A stretch of DNA of 64,000 nt from assembly GCF_023055435.1 (NCBI RefSeq), contig NW_025964372.1, forward strand, positions 23,312,001 through 23,376,000. Direction: 5' to 3'. Positions within the stretch are counted from its first letter, which is position 1. Each line of letters begins with the position of its first letter. This document shows positions 470-7,600 of this stretch, in pieces. Origin of the DNA: Haliotis rufescens. Taxonomy: Eukaryota. Under the pieces are notes generated by a model. The model ran no database searches. It worked only from the letters and a program-made list of their open reading frames with translations, and was not told the origin of the DNA. The translations under genes and the position numbers were made by a program.

Positions 470-1515
470 CGATATTATCACTGTGACATCATCAGCTTAG
501 GCAGTCATCGTGACAGTCGCTGGAGCTTGCAGACCACTGCGAGACGTAACGCTGACACTGCAATACTGGTAGAACAGAAATTGGAAAAGAGTAATGTTCA
601 CAGGAGAAAGCAGATTCAGGTTTTTCCTAATAGGTGTAAGAATTTGTGTCAACCTCCGACAATGACAATATTGTTGCCTTCAGGATGTCGAACTGTCTGG
701 ACGTGACAGCATATGTAGCCCGGCCAGTGCGGCATCATCATCCCTGTCAAGGCGGCATCTGTAGCCAAATCAAAGTGGCATCATTATTCCTGGAATGCAG
801 CATCTGTGACACTGTCAATGCTGCATCATTGGCCCTGTCAATTCAGCACCTGTAACCAAGTTAAGAAAGATCTTTTGATTTTGGAAGGACTCACCACTGG
901 ACAGCATTACATTGACCAGTCTCCCTATCCTGTTGTACTACCGTTCTTGCAACAGAACGTTTCAACAAGATAACACAAGACGTCATGTGACTTGCCTTGG
1001 TCAGCACGATAACGAGACTAATCACCTTTGGAGTGAGTGAGTGAGTTGGGTTTAACGCTGCTTTTAACAGTATTCCAGTTATATCACGGCGTGTCAGCTT
1101 AATGTGGGAGGAAAGCCCGAGGGGATGCAGGTCTCAGACGTTTACCATTTCGGTGAAACCCACGAGCACGGGTATGGTGCTGACAAATCTCGAAACATAA
1201 TCGGGGCGAACCGTGATTCGAACCCACAATCATAGGTTTCTGGCGTGCCCAAGGGACGTAACTCTGCACAGCGAATCACGGCGCCTTAGACGACTTGGCC
1301 ACCCTTGCCCCCTATCACCTTTGAGATTTGAAACAGTTCCGAGATTTGGAAAAGTTGTGGGATCACCTTGACCGTCAAATTAGTTCACGACCAGGTCGCC
1401 CTTATAACAAAGATCATTTAGCAGAAGAATGGTGTTGAATCCCATTTTTATGATCAGACGTATCACATCTTCTTCTCATCGTCGAAGTTCTGGCGCACGT
1501 TGATTACACAATACT
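470..1515 (+). mobile_element. Decayed Tc1/mariner transposase remnant, interrupted by a SINE
   Basis: Fragments TGQHYIDQ, PVVLPFLQQN and FQQDN occur across frameshifts. Homologous to 20430-21030 on the opposite strand. Confidence 0.7.
1031..1313 (-). mobile_element. tRNA-derived SINE family C (V-domain-like), full length
   Basis: Reverse complement shows A box, GGTTCGAAT B box, tttcctcccaca segment and (TCAC)n tail. TSD atcacctttg at 1021-1030 and 1314-1323. Confidence 0.85.
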
Positions 1516-2109
1516 GACTGACAATGGTGACATTCTAAAGGATTTAAGGGAGTTCATGTGTTGATTTCAGTCTTGATGGTTGATCGAATACTGAACAACT
1601 GACTCCATTCTCCAAACTGGACACAATACTGTCTTTGTTGTTGTTGTTGTTGGCATGACTTGTAATGATGTTGATATATAACTCATGTTCTTTGACAATA
1701 CAAGTATGTTTCAGTCATATCACAAGTAGAATCAATAACCTTGTCCAAGGATATAACACAGTGACTTAGTGTTACAGGCATACTGTTTATCACGCCCATG
1801 TATCGATGTAATAAAATATGGCTTTGCTCACGAAATACTCTGTATTGATGAGGATGGCCATATCGTGGTCGAGACTTATTTTGAAGGGTTAGATTGTGTT
1901 TTTCAAGCAGATGGAGGCTGAATGTTTTATTTACACAGAATTATAAGCTGCGTCCGACCCTCTATATTTATGTTTGCGATTGGTAGGAAGCTGTCTTGCT
2001 TTGAAAGACACTCAACGGGTAATTTTTTAACAATGATTTAAGAGTTGTGATCCTTATCGATAGGAAGCTGACATATGAATATTTCTGAATGTATGTTCTG
2101 TATTTTCAG

Positions 2110-2200
2110 ATACCGTTACATCAACATAATCTGGTTCTGCTCCAACTGGTTCGCCATGAGCAACTCCTGCTACAACCCCTTCATCTACGGCCTTCTCAAC
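2110..2200 (+). CDS. Lkr: Neuropeptide GPCR (leucokinin/lymnokinin receptor-like), exon encoding TM7
   Basis: Acceptor ttttcAG ends at 2109; donor GTcagt at 2201. Reads YRYINIIWFCSNWFAMSNSCYNPFIYGLLN, containing the class A NPxxY motif and the MSNSCYNPFIYG signature I recall from kinin receptors. Confidence 0.88.
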
Positions 2201-3940
2201 GTCAGTACCACGATAATAACATCTCTTTTCATATCAATAACGAGAGTAGGGGGTCCATATCAATAACGGGATGGGGGAGGTACGGTAACACACTCCCTTT
2301 AAACAGTTGCTTCCATTAGTCATGTCAGCTTGCCATGGGCATGATCCCTTGTGTGACAGCGCCCTACACGTCCCCTAACTGCGACACTTTGATGTGGGGG
2401 TTGGGTGTGGGGTGGTGTCGTCACTTCCTTGTGTATTTAGTTAAGACTAGGGATGGTGCCCCCTCATCTTTAATTGTCACGTCTATAGATAATTAAATTG
2501 GCATCCTGCTAAATTGTTGATCCGGACCCTCCGTCCGGAGTAATGACGTTTCGTAATACGCGTGTCGTAGGATGTCAGCAGAGTTTGGTAGAAAACAAAT
2601 AGCACGTCAGTGATGTGGATTCTAGAACATTTTAACAAAACTTAGTTGACTACTACAGAACTTAATTTTCGCTTTATATAGTCCAATATGCATTGCCAAA
2701 ACAAAGTCATTGAATCTATTTCTTTTAACAAATGTCTTCAAGTCATGGCGGAAATAGAATTTTCCTTTTGAACAAGTACAGATTAGTATTTCAACGGAAT
2801 TCCGTAATACCTATGTATTCCTTGATGCCGGACCGCGTGGTTCTAATTTGTACATTTCTGACGATATATTTGCATCATTGCACACTCGATCTGGGAATGG
2901 AGTACAAAAAAAATTGCTGTAAAATGTCTTAAACCCTTGGGGTGTTAACTGTCACGATTCTGAAGAACCCGAAATCTTTTGTCAAAGGTGAATCAATAAA
3001 AAAAACCGTACATACCAAGGTGGGTGGTTTTTTTAATCCGAGCTTTTCGCTCTTACTGTTAAGCACTTAACTTACATTTTTTTCTAAATAAAAGCGACAA
3101 AAACTTTCCATAGCCACAAGGTATTTTCTCTTAACGGAAAAGTCGATTTTCGTTTCTGACTGTGTCATGAACAGGTGTTTGTAAATCACTATGAAATACA
3201 CGTTTATAACCATTCAGTATGTTCATTTTATAAGGTTCTGTTCATTACAGAGGCGTACATATTTGAATCATTACACTTGCAAACATTAATTTCGTCATTT
3301 TGAACACAATGTAGAAATAAGTGCCTTAGCCACGTAAGGATCAGCTGGTCGAAGGTTCGAGTCCCACATTTGCCCCCTTTATGGTCATTGGTCTGTGGGC
3401 ATTTTCATATCACATGAAGTTGTTATATAAGGGGATACATTCTAGCTCAATCACTCACTTAGATCAATGTAAGTTTTATCTTCGCAGAATGCTCATTCGA
3501 CTTATTCAAAAAAGCTGCCATATGAATTCAAAAAAGTTTGTATTACATTCCCATAGCACTCTCTTTCTACGCGTTCTCTGGAAATACTATGACGTCATGA
3601 TTTAATGGCTGACGTCATATTCTTTCATGACATCAAAAGAACCCGCCAGATTAAGAAAATGATCCGAAACCTCAACTACATCAACTTTGTGTGATAAATG
3701 TTATTTAATCCAAATATGCTTCTCAAAAGAAATTAAAGAACGCCTCATTCGTTCACATTACTATAATTAATCTGTCATGCCATAACAGAATAACTAAAGT
3801 ATATATAATGGATGCGATACTAATACTGAATAGAATATGTTCTCAAATTTGGGACATGATACTTACTAAAGAAAGACTTCTAATCCCTTTCAAAACGTTT
3901 GTCAACCACTCCGATTTCGGTGCATTTTAAATAACATCGT

Positions 3941-4201
3941 CCCGTGAAGATCCGGGGTAGAATAGGTCTTCAGCAACCCATGCTTGCCGTAAAAGGCAGC
4001 TATGCTTGTCGTAAGAGGCGACTAACGGGATTGGGTGGTCAGTCTCGCTGACTGGTTGATGCATGTCATCGTATCCCAATTGCATGGGTCGATGCTCATG
4101 ATGTCAATCACTGGATTGTCTGGTCCAGACTCGATTATTTACAGACCGCCGTCATTTAGCTGGACTATTGTTGGGCGTTAAACAACAAATAAACAAACAA
4201 A
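3941..4201 (+). mobile_element. SINE-like family B (non-tRNA head), in the last GPCR intron
   Basis: Begins cccgtgaagatccggggtagaataggtcttcagc and ends cgttaaacaacaaa. TSD aaataacatc. Several near-identical copies in the window. Confidence 0.85.
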
Positions 4202-4261
4202 AAATAACATCACTTGAAAACTCTGAACAAATAAATATGGTCTTTCTCTTATTTCCACCAG

Positions 4262-4489
4262 GAGAAGTTTAAGCGCGAGTTCCGAATCCTCTTCTCCATG
4301 TGCCCATGCCAGTGTGCTCAGAAAGAATACAAGAAGGAGTATACGGACTACTACAGTGAGGACGGCAACCAGACGTTCCGACGATGCAGCATGATGAGGA
4401 ACCCGGCGGTGAGGTACAACTTCAACAGGGACGAGCACAAGCGACTGTCCCGAAGGTCCACGGAAATGACAGAGACATCGCAAATCTGA
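4262..4489 (+). CDS. Lkr: Same GPCR, terminal coding exon (helix 8 and C-tail)
   Basis: Pyrimidine tract and ccaccAG acceptor end at 4261. A phase-0 join gives GLLN|EKFKREFRILFSMCPCQC...STEMTETSQI*. The Cys cluster after helix 8 fits palmitoylation sites. Stop TGA at 4487-4489. Confidence 0.9.
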   Translation, partial: EKFKREFRILFSMCPCQCAQKEYKKEYTDYYSEDGNQTFRRCSMMRNPAVRYNFNRDEHKRLSRRSTEMTETSQI

Positions 4490-7150
4490 CTAGCACGGGA
4501 CCGGCGCCATCGAGATATGGCCAAAGCTCTCAATATGTCCAGCGTTTGACATCAAATGTCTATGCTGATTGTGAAGCTTAATGTTCAAGCGTTGTGAATC
4601 CGCATAGCCGATGGACACAGATGTTTGGGACAGTGTACAAACATGTGACATCACAGGCGAATCAATGAACATGCTTATATCAAGGCGCTTGTCCCTGCTA
4701 GAGATGCTGAGGAATAAGCACAAACTGTTGTTATTCCTGTTTTGTTTAGACTTCAAAATATTAATGTTAAAGGTGTGAGACTATTTCTTCATAACGTAGA
4801 AATGAAAGAGAAAAACACTCACAGTTGTAGAGGACGACATGTGGTCATGTAATTTGAGGTCAGGGACCGTCAAATATCTAGGTAACAAGACGCGAAAGTT
4901 AGGAGCTAATATACCATAGACGCTGATCTGACTCTGCTTGTGACTCTGATCTGCATCCGACAACCGATTTCAAAAGGAAGTCTAAAGAATTCATGCTGCA
5001 GATGTCGGTGCTTGCCATTTAATGCCTAACCCTGGTCAAACTTCTGAGGTTCTCAGATGAGAATTGTGTATACCCATAATCAAACATTCTCTGATGGTTC
5101 ATGGGGATGCCTGAAGTCATTGTCTCGTAGGACCACAGCCAGGTCACCAACACATCCTTTGGCTCAACTTTGGAGGGATGTGTTCTTTACGGTCCAGTAA
5201 CGTATACACGGTGAGATTGGTGGTATAGTCATGGACAATGCTTTGAAGTGAGTCAAAAATCGCCTTGATCAAACTCTTTTTCTGATCCAAGTGACAATCA
5301 ATTACTGGCAAAACTGTGAAAGGATCAAATGTGCGGTACGTGGGAATGGGGAGTCTGATTCAAATCCAAAGGACAAACATAATATGGATGTGTGTAAAAG
5401 TTGAACGATCTACCATACTTGTACAGAGAAGTAGAGTACTCACAGAACATGTTGATAGCTTTTACTTGACATGAATATCGACCACATCAAGTGAACCACT
5501 TGGGTTGAATACACGTCAATAATGGTGTTTGCTGCTCAAAAACAAAAATCGTGGCAGTGTTAAACACTTAGCCTTTGGGTTGCTATACAAGCATACTAAT
5601 GGCATTTCCAGTGTTCTGAGGTCCAAATCATGATTGCCTGTAATTATGTGACTCCTCGAACCACATGGTAATTTGACCTAAAATCTGTGCATGATATGCC
5701 TCAGGGTGGGATCGATACCAAAGTGTTTTCTTGTGGACAAGTCGTCAAGCTAGAACTCTTAATCTGTGGCTAATGGTCAAAGATCGCTCATTAGGATTTG
5801 GCTGTAAGGGTCTCTGTCGTTTGTGTTTGTGTGTTCCAAGGCATGACTTGTGAATGGAGAGTGCGTTTCTCCAATCAGCTGTGAATTTCGTGGACCGATA
5901 CTCGAAAACGTTTCGTTAGTTATGATTGAACAAGACAGGGCTACGTAACTGGAACATTTCGTCAGGGTGTAACTATGAATTTGATCAATCGAAGAACGCA
6001 GTGGATATAAGACACAACAATCATGATTTTACGGTGTATTGTTGTATGATGGAAAAAGTTTGTATGTGAAATACTTAACCGATGGGTTAGCTTGATATGG
6101 TGGATTGGTTGCAAAATATACAAATATCAGAATCAATGACAGGTTTCATTTTGTGATTACCAAAGAGGAGCAAAGGTCAAATTTGAGGGCCGGAGGGCGA
6201 AGGTCATGGTGTGTGAAATGGGGTTGAGGTTGTCCCATGGGGTCGGGGCAACTTCTCTCTCCATATCATGTCAGATGGACAAAAAAAATTAACTTAAACA
6301 AAAAATATTAATTTTAAGATTTTCTAATTTTCCGACCCATTTGTATGCTTTCATTTTCAGGAAGGAACCTCAAACCTATGCTCCTCTAAAGTCAAACACA
6401 AATGTTTATTACGCGGCAAGTTTGAAAGAATTGTTAAAGGACATATAACAAACAGTTCACAGAATGATATCACACATTCATATCGACACCATGTACATAT
6501 AGGACCATCCCAGTTGGAGGCGCATTGGTGAATATCAAAGCTCAACGAGAGATATGAACCCTTCTCAGGGGAAGTATCTCGGTCTCGGATACAAGACTTA
6601 CGAAGTTCTCATATGACACCTGTTGAAATATGACATGTAAAGTTTCATGCAAGATTACATACTTTAAAATTGGGCTGCATGAAGGCTCGAGATGGGACTT
6701 TCCTCGTCGTATTGTGAATATAATATGTAATGAGCCTTTAAACAAATGACTGTATAATATTATGGCTGATGTAATCTTTCCTATAAACATTACATATTCA
6801 CACATATTTCTATCAGAAATGTAATTTGTATTAGTGATTAGAACCTATCAATATTCTGTGTTTAACTCATGTATGTTTTGCTCGGTTTTCATTGTTATAA
6901 CCTTGTGTGTATGCTACATATTTGTATGTTGGGATAAATATATATATGACGTAACTTTCATTTCATGGGTTGTGCTGGCATGTGAATTATTTGCATTATT
7001 AGATTAAAGCAGTCATGTATTTACTCACTATGATTATGTTGGTATGTAATAATACATAAATGTTTAATTCAATAATAAAGATAAATGATTGATGTCCAGT
7101 CAGCGGAACATATGATGTATATGATTACTGAATATGATAATAAATTATTT
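4490..7150 (+). other. Probable 3'UTR of the GPCR with AATAAA signals at 7074 and 7139
   Basis: Follows the stop codon, contains none of the SINEs that are common elsewhere, and ends in an AT-rich region with AATAAA hexamers. The 3' end is inferred. Confidence 0.45.
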
Positions 7151-7369
7151 CAAATTATTGTTTAGTATCTTTGTGAGTAGTGGAATGTCTGGTCATGCAT
7201 TTTTGTCTGGATTCATCCAAAACACCATGCTGTGGTGACACGGTCACAAATCGGTTAAATAAAAGCGACAAAACCTTTCCATAAGATTAACACTTCTCTG
7301 CTAAAAGTGTCATATGTACTATTCAGGCTAGATCAAGAGCATGTGTTGATTAACACTATCAAATAGTGA

Positions 7370-7600
7370 CGTAAGCAGGTGTTCGCGAAAGGGTGATAGT
7401 TTCCTGCCCCACCGATGGCATCCGTCACACATCCATGCAAAAGCAAGTCAGTTGTTCACATGAGAAAATACGTGAACATGTGGTACAAGTCAAAATAGAG
7501 CATTACAGCAGACATAATTTCTGTCACTTATGCCTCAAATATGGAAATGACAAACACATGTCTGCCATAAAACCTTTTGCAGGGCTTTGAAGGATGTGAC
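7370..7600. repeat. Dispersed repeat family F (caggtgttcgcgaaagggtg...cctgccc...cacccgtc)
   Basis: Diverged copies at ~85-240, 8400-8530, 8630-8790, 51190-51280, 54910-55000 and 62370-62590. Confidence 0.7.

Follow-up and report, generated by a model that had tools for sequence, protein, structure and literature searches.

Does translation of the neuropeptide receptor gene at this locus of the abalone Haliotis rufescens always end at the annotated stop codon, or do some ribosomes pass it and complete a longer receptor? The locus lies in a stretch of 64,000 nucleotides (NCBI RefSeq assembly GCF_023055435.1, contig NW_025964372.1, positions 23,312,001 to 23,376,000 of the forward strand), hereafter the window, whose first letter is position 1. 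The gene encodes a G-protein-coupled receptor (GPCR) of the leucokinin type. A sequence-only reading of the window had proposed that its stop stands in the UGA-CUAG readthrough context, that an open frame follows, and that passing the stop would exchange one PDZ-type C-terminus for another. Every coordinate was confirmed: ATC-TGA-CTAG is present with the stop and its context at 4487-4493, and 19 open codons lead to a second TGA at 4547-4549. Comparison with a distant orthologue points to programmed readthrough of this stop in the leucokinin-receptor mRNA, maintained in evolution, which we consider the likely explanation and which probably yields a second, longer receptor form with a different docking tail. 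That the extension is translated by readthrough, how efficiently this happens, that PDZ domains bind and what follows for the receptor are what we infer from these sequences.

Stop Codon and Extension in the Abalone Sequence

The last exon is preceded by the acceptor ...ccaccag, and its frame closes as ...ACA TCG CAA ATC-TGA-CTAG; no variant was listed at the TGA (4487-4489) in four runs. The GC content of the extension (0.56) is like that of the coding sequence (CDS; 0.52) and unlike that of the next 300 nt of the 3' untranslated region (UTR; 0.39), which was counted in favor of a coding reading. The C-termini of the short form (-SQI) and of the extended form (-SSV) both match the pattern S/T-x-hydrophobic and are thus of the class I PDZ type, as the sequence-only reading had stated.

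Chance rates for such an arrangement were taken from 248 kb of local DNA, with both strands counted. CTAG followed TGA in 9 of 5625 cases (1 per 625) and CTA in 1 per 87; at least 19 open codons followed a random TGA in 33% of frames, and an S/T-x-V/I/L ending was found in 3.6% of the frames open that far. The CTAG motif together with a PDZ-type ending comes to ~6e-5 per gene. The extension is unremarkable by its length, since a third of random TGA frames remain open over the same distance, and the motif alone could be a coincidence. The observation in the single genome is real; alone it is no more than chance could give somewhere in a whole genome, and it is the sequence comparison across species that raises it above chance.

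Comparison with a Distant Orthologue

The sequence compared is FXBE01011260.1 (hereafter L009), a 1483-nt metagenome contig from a distant mollusc, which was the sole contig returned by a metagenome-contig scan using peptide patterns from the CDS part of the tail only; the sequence behind its stop is therefore an independent observation. It contains the end of an intron, the orthologous last exon (92% amino acid identity) and 850 nt behind the stop, and its sole match in the abalone genome is window 4227-4533, with 79% identity. Over the CDS part of the last exon, the proportion of nonsynonymous differences (pN) is 0.044 and that of synonymous differences (pS) is 0.73, with 41% of the third codon positions differing. 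By this measure synonymous sites are effectively saturated, so the lineage of L009 is a distant one, and neither the intron nor the remaining 3' UTR can be aligned with the abalone sequence.

Behind its stop, L009 reads TGA CTA TCA CGC ... and continues for exactly 19 codons (LSRDRRHRDAAKALNSSCV) to a TGA at the same codon index, with no indel. The sequence-only reading had looked to orthologues for TGACTAG, the frame and the terminal S-x-V; L009 retains the frame and length of the extension as well as TGA-CTA, the second stop and the final S-x-V, and the strict CTAG is the part that did not hold (CTAT), so that the six-base core TGACTA is shared between TGACTAG in abalone and TGACTAT in L009. 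Four codons of the extension are identical, 11 differ only synonymously and 4 change the residue, leaving 15 of the 19 amino acids identical. The 19 base differences are distributed 5/2/12 over codon positions 1, 2 and 3 (hypergeometric P = 0.0011 for at least 12 at third positions), with pN 0.16 and pS 0.81. When 19 substitutions were placed at random in 200,000 simulations, at least 15 of 19 residues were kept with P = 2.5e-5, and for at most 7 changes at the 38 first and second positions the probability is 2e-8 if the third-position rate of the extension itself (12/19) is assumed and 0.003 with that of the CDS. In the 60 nt that follow the second stop, ungapped identity is down to 20/60, the random level. 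Of the six frames, the sense frame is conserved best; coding in antisense or in a shifted frame was rejected, as the other five frames are less conserved or contain stops. This pattern is that of purifying selection acting in the zero frame on the extension across two distant lineages, and the lack of any frameshift or stop in the L009 extension, together with a synonymous pattern typical of coding sequence, supports readthrough as originally proposed.

The basic RDRRHRD cluster is identical in the two species. The extended form would end in -SSV in abalone and in -SCV in L009; serine at position -2 and valine at position 0 are kept by synonymous codons, and position -1 varies, which is usual for PDZ ligands.

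The 3' UTR of L009 carries a 42-nt minisatellite of about six units (L009:668-952), which TRF reports as 5.2 copies at 734-952 with 81% matches and which can be traced by eye back to ~668. Every unit contains a TGA, and abalone has a single copy.

Context Signal Behind the Stop

In human cells, UGA-CUA alone gives 1.5% readthrough (HEK-293T), and deep mutagenesis indicates that readthrough requires CU at positions +1 and +2 and is lowered by nearly every change to CUAG (PMC4132726 / bioRxiv 10.64898/2026.07.14.738498). With T in place of the G of CUAG, L009 may read through less than abalone. No stable or shared RNA fold was found behind the stop in abalone and L009 (z-scores -1.3 to +1.2), after which the C-U-A(-G) context alone is likely to be the signal. 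A stimulatory or conserved RNA structure at this place was not supported, the folds differing between the species.

Receptor Identity and Canonical C-Terminus

The database protein P0123, which corresponds to this gene and carries the annotation 'tachykinin-like peptides receptor 99D' in both H. rufescens and H. cracherodii, matches Pfam 7tm_1 over residues 54-305 (E=1.2e-66), the rhodopsin-type seven-transmembrane domain. Identity of exon 1 is 97% with H. asinina and 69% with the leucokinin receptor of Aplysia, ALKR (P0009), which is activated by leucokinin-like peptides (PMC9562341). Over the full length, the abalone receptor and Aplysia ALKR are 67% identical and their C-termini are alike. 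When ALKR was searched back against the abalone genome, the best locus was this gene (E=3.9e-94), the next best being 33-35% identical. Judged by these reciprocal sequence matches, the abalone gene and the deorphanised leucokinin-like peptide receptor of Aplysia are one-to-one orthologues, and the label of a kinin-type receptor given to it earlier was correct. In other invertebrates, feeding and fluid balance are under the control of the leucokinin receptor.

Haliotis, Littorina and Aplysia have the same canonical end, -TETSQI, which reads -TETSTI in Plakobranchus and -TEQSII in scallop, so that a class I PDZ pattern is present as -SQI in these gastropods, -STI in Plakobranchus and -SII in scallop. 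Its conservation across gastropods indicates that the first stop marks the main, functionally important end of the protein. A homologue search with P0123 residues 300-384 gave six matches, none of which extends beyond the canonical end or has a sense codon in place of the stop. The 75-amino acid tail gave only two irrelevant weak matches among protein representatives and, under a length filter, no candidate in a homologue search, and scans of genome contigs and viral contigs for the tail gave no match.

Alternative Explanations

Several observations weigh against maintained readthrough. The cross-species evidence consists of one divergent orthologue contig, of metagenomic origin, so that two lineages are compared, and the seventh base, G, is not kept in it (T in L009). 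The last nine codons of the L009 extension and its second stop would form the first unit of the 42-nt minisatellite, and repeat homogenisation could have acted on this half of the L009 extension. For sister species B (run X19), whose UTR differs by ~2%, the first differences listed are at 4554 and 4556 and none lies in 4262-4553; this agrees with the L009 comparison but is uninformative, with 0 differences in 60 nt against ~1.3 expected, and we infer that the difference listing is complete to 5805. The conserved canonical end marks the short form as the main functional product, so that the long form may be rare.

The single foreign sequence and the strong conservation of the canonical C-terminus also favor an ordinary, efficient stop, at which TGA-CTAG would be coincidental and the similarity behind it would reflect a non-coding 3' UTR element or luck between two sequences. 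Some genes of any genome should carry the motif by chance, a frame as long as this one is found behind one random TGA in three, and among the 23 human genes with UGA-CUAG only four have positive PhyloCSF behind the stop (Loughran et al., PMC4132726). However, a non-coding element would not put 12 of its 19 changes into third codon positions (P=0.0011), leave 15 of 19 residues unchanged (P=2.5e-5) or lose its conservation exactly at a positionally conserved second stop; at the distance of L009, alignment fails for the flanking intron and for the UTR elsewhere, and no conserved structure was found. We therefore consider an ordinary stop unlikely.

Translation of the extension through another kind of recoding, either adenosine-to-inosine (A-to-I) editing of UGA to UGG (Trp) or insertion of selenocysteine, would look alike in the comparison, with conserved coding sequence behind a conserved in-frame TGA. 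Editing enzymes and many selenoproteins are present in molluscs, and a minority of edited reads would be invisible in contigs. However, the duplex around the stop that ADAR would need is not stable (z-scores as above), three RNA-type runs list no A>G at 4489, and the conservation of CTA after the stop is explained by readthrough and not by editing or selenocysteine. No Rfam family, the selenocysteine insertion sequence (SECIS) included, matched at E<=1 in window 4200-7400, which covers the 2.9 kb behind the stop, or in L009, and selenocysteine was rejected on this ground; recoding of either kind is accordingly quite improbable. Least probable, to the point of being very doubtful, is that alternative splicing or an independent downstream open reading frame (ORF) brings 4490-4546 into frame without passage of the stop. 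CTAG ends in AG and could serve as an acceptor in abalone, and alternative C-terminal isoforms, reported for the related Aplysia tachykinin receptors (PMC11365428), were counted for this view. Against it, that AG is missing in L009 (CTAT) and no other AG is common to both species, conservation sets in with the first codon after the stop, the ATG inside the abalone extension corresponds to GCA in L009 so that no start is conserved, and all RNA contigs are unspliced through the region.

Proposed Mechanism

In the mechanism that we propose for readthrough, most ribosomes would stop at the UGA (4487-4489) and release the 384-amino acid receptor with a free -TETSQI. The 3' context C-U-A(-G) would weaken recognition by the release factor, and in a minority of events a near-cognate tRNA would decode the UGA; as in other eukaryotes, Trp, Arg or Cys would be inserted there. 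The ribosome would then continue for 19 codons to the second UGA (4547-4549), giving a 404-amino acid isoform in which -SQI is internal, the basic RDRRHRD cluster is added and -SSV forms a new class I-type end. The cluster would fit an R-x-R-type motif, and the two isoforms should differ in scaffold binding, trafficking or retention. A more comprehensive version, in which readthrough is an old, selected feature of molluscs that uses the same UGA-CUA signal as the opioid receptors and acts as a translational switch from one PDZ-type end (-SQI) to another (-S-x-V), a retention-like, Arg-rich motif being added, may be offered only tentatively.

Relation to Known Readthrough Systems

The list of UGA-CUAG genes cited in the sequence-only reading (AQP4, MAPK10, LDHB, MDH1, VDR, OPRK1 and OPRL1) agrees with the published text. 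The abalone gene resembles these vertebrate genes in its UGA-CUA(G), in a short extension with a coding signature and in a conserved second stop, and vertebrate cases were first predicted from a coding signature behind the stop such as is found in the abalone extension. With OPRK1 and OPRL1 it further shares the gene type, being also a neuropeptide class A GPCR. However, it comes from a mollusc, belongs to an unrelated GPCR subfamily and has an unrelated extension, and its readthrough is predicted from sequence; the resemblance to the opioid receptors would be either convergent or due to a very old ribosomal property. In function, the nearest analogy is with LDHB and MDH1, in which readthrough exposes a hidden C-terminal peroxisomal targeting signal. 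In both systems a signal bound to the very C-terminus is altered, so that isoforms would be sorted or bound differently, whereas in LDHB and MDH1 a signal is added to a protein without one and in abalone one PDZ-type ligand (-SQI) is predicted to be swapped for another (-SSV/-SCV).

The abundant readthrough of Drosophila and Anopheles, which involves neuronal and cell-surface receptor genes, offers a parallel among invertebrates, with a UGA-C context, nervous-system receptor genes and detection by conservation behind the stop. The insect genes with top scores differ in that they tend to have A at +5 (CA[A/G]N[U/C/G]A motif), where abalone has CUA. The insect leucokinin receptor Lkr was not found in the supplementary text files of Jungreis 2016, and the two tachykinin receptors in that supplement appear only in 'Comparison' rows flagged 'No', which were taken as non-candidates. 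The UGA-CUA(G) signal is also shared with nsP3/nsP4 of alphaviruses such as Sindbis and Chikungunya, unlike which the abalone case is not viral; there a large polymerase lies downstream and RNA structure often assists. The alphavirus signal works in vertebrate and arthropod hosts, which suggests that it acts on conserved eukaryotic termination machinery. A literature search gave no report of nuclear readthrough in molluscs, of readthrough in leucokinin receptors or of a PDZ-ligand switch by readthrough, and the supplements of the Aplysia receptor paper make no mention of a stop codon, UTR, nucleotide sequence, TETSQI or PDZ.

Gene Model, Expression and Other Features

The gene consists of four coding exons with 384 codons, and the model equals P0123; exons were searched singly, and this database protein stood for the whole protein. 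The coordinates are collected in Table 1. When the whole genome was searched with Pfam 7tm_1, an open exon over transmembrane segments (TM) 1-5 came to light at C594:23184711-23185277. Exon 3 alone matches 7tm_1 weakly, and its end was set by the RNA contig and P0123. RNA contig X19 record 9 joins 2110-2198 directly to 4262 and runs on to 7116, and RNA-type contigs of three runs cover the region from 4262 to 7038-7116 unspliced through both stops; the contigs that do so come from two species. Spliced RNA contigs, which join 2200 to 4262, confirm this exon as the expressed last one and support the 3' UTR of ~2.6 kb.

Table 1. Coordinates of the receptor gene, its two stops and the candidate extension (window positions unless another sequence is named).
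Feature	Position	Strand	Basis or remark
Coding exon 1 (TM1-5), 245 codons, donor gtaggt	C594:23184552-23185286 (L008:1552-2286), 127 kb before the window		
Coding exon 2 (TM6)	C594:23290280-23290380 (L004:8280-8380), 21.7 kb before the window		ORF scan upstream of the window
Coding exon 3 (TM7, NPFIY motif)	2110..2200	+	RNA contig X19 record 9; sequence identical to P0123
Last intron, gt...cag	2201..4261	+	Skipped in RNA contigs
Coding part of last exon: helix 8 (EKFKREF) and cytoplasmic tail, end -TETSQI	4262..4486	+	Sequence; comparison with L009
Annotated stop TGA, the proposed leaky stop	4487..4489	+	Same place in L009 (633-635)
CTAG, putative readthrough context	4490..4493	+	CTA kept in L009, fourth base T there
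Candidate 19-codon readthrough extension LARDRRHRDMAKALNMSSV, with Arg-rich RDRRHRD cluster and terminal S-x-V	4490..4546	+	
Second in-frame stop TGA, end of cross-species similarity	4547..4549	+	Same codon index in L009 (693-695)
Remaining 3' UTR, AATAAA at 7074-7079	4550..7100	+	RNA contigs end at 7038-7116

The exons for TM1-5 and TM6 are separated by an intron of 105 kb (C594:23185287-23290279), which parallels the 136-kb intron 2 of the Aplysia orthologue (PMC9562341). Within this intron, long tandem repeats that look coding (L006:855-1727, L006:4855-5337 and L004:2984-3868; ALSEIPC..., IPVPIATEIS..., VTVSVTVLVT...) are probably minisatellites rather than exons. The last intron contains at ~3941-4170 a SINE-like (short interspersed nuclear element) short repeat of very high copy number. 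Summed contig depth over 3773-4166 rises to 25 million in a DNA run and to 0.27-0.54 million in those of RNA type, and the repeat shows hundreds of loose ends, with sharp starts at 3941 or 3944 and ends at 4155 or 4164. A further stretch at window ~1030-1320 is like the head of a tRNA-derived SINE (gagtgagtgagtt..., followed by a tRNA-like region); ARAGORN called no tRNA on 900-4300. The last exon opens with a tandem NAGNAG acceptor (cag|GAG, window 4259-4264), which is kept in L009:405-413 and explains isoform X2 of H. cracherodii (P0125, 383 amino acids), which lacks the Glu of ...GLLN-E-KFKREF.

Implications

If confirmed, the abalone gene would add an unannotated 404-amino acid isoform to this receptor and would extend the UGA-CUA(G) readthrough class from vertebrates and alphaviruses to a mollusc gene, arguing that the signal acts on termination machinery common to bilaterians and that neuropeptide GPCRs recruited it more than once. 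For annotation, abalone gene models ending in TGA-CTA would then deserve a check for conserved extensions. The functional idea that it offers is an exchange of C-terminal docking motifs. If true, this would be the first conserved case of nuclear readthrough in Lophotrochozoa and the first documented PDZ-ligand switch in a GPCR that is controlled by readthrough, and the switch would set the share of the receptor going to a different scaffold or compartment.

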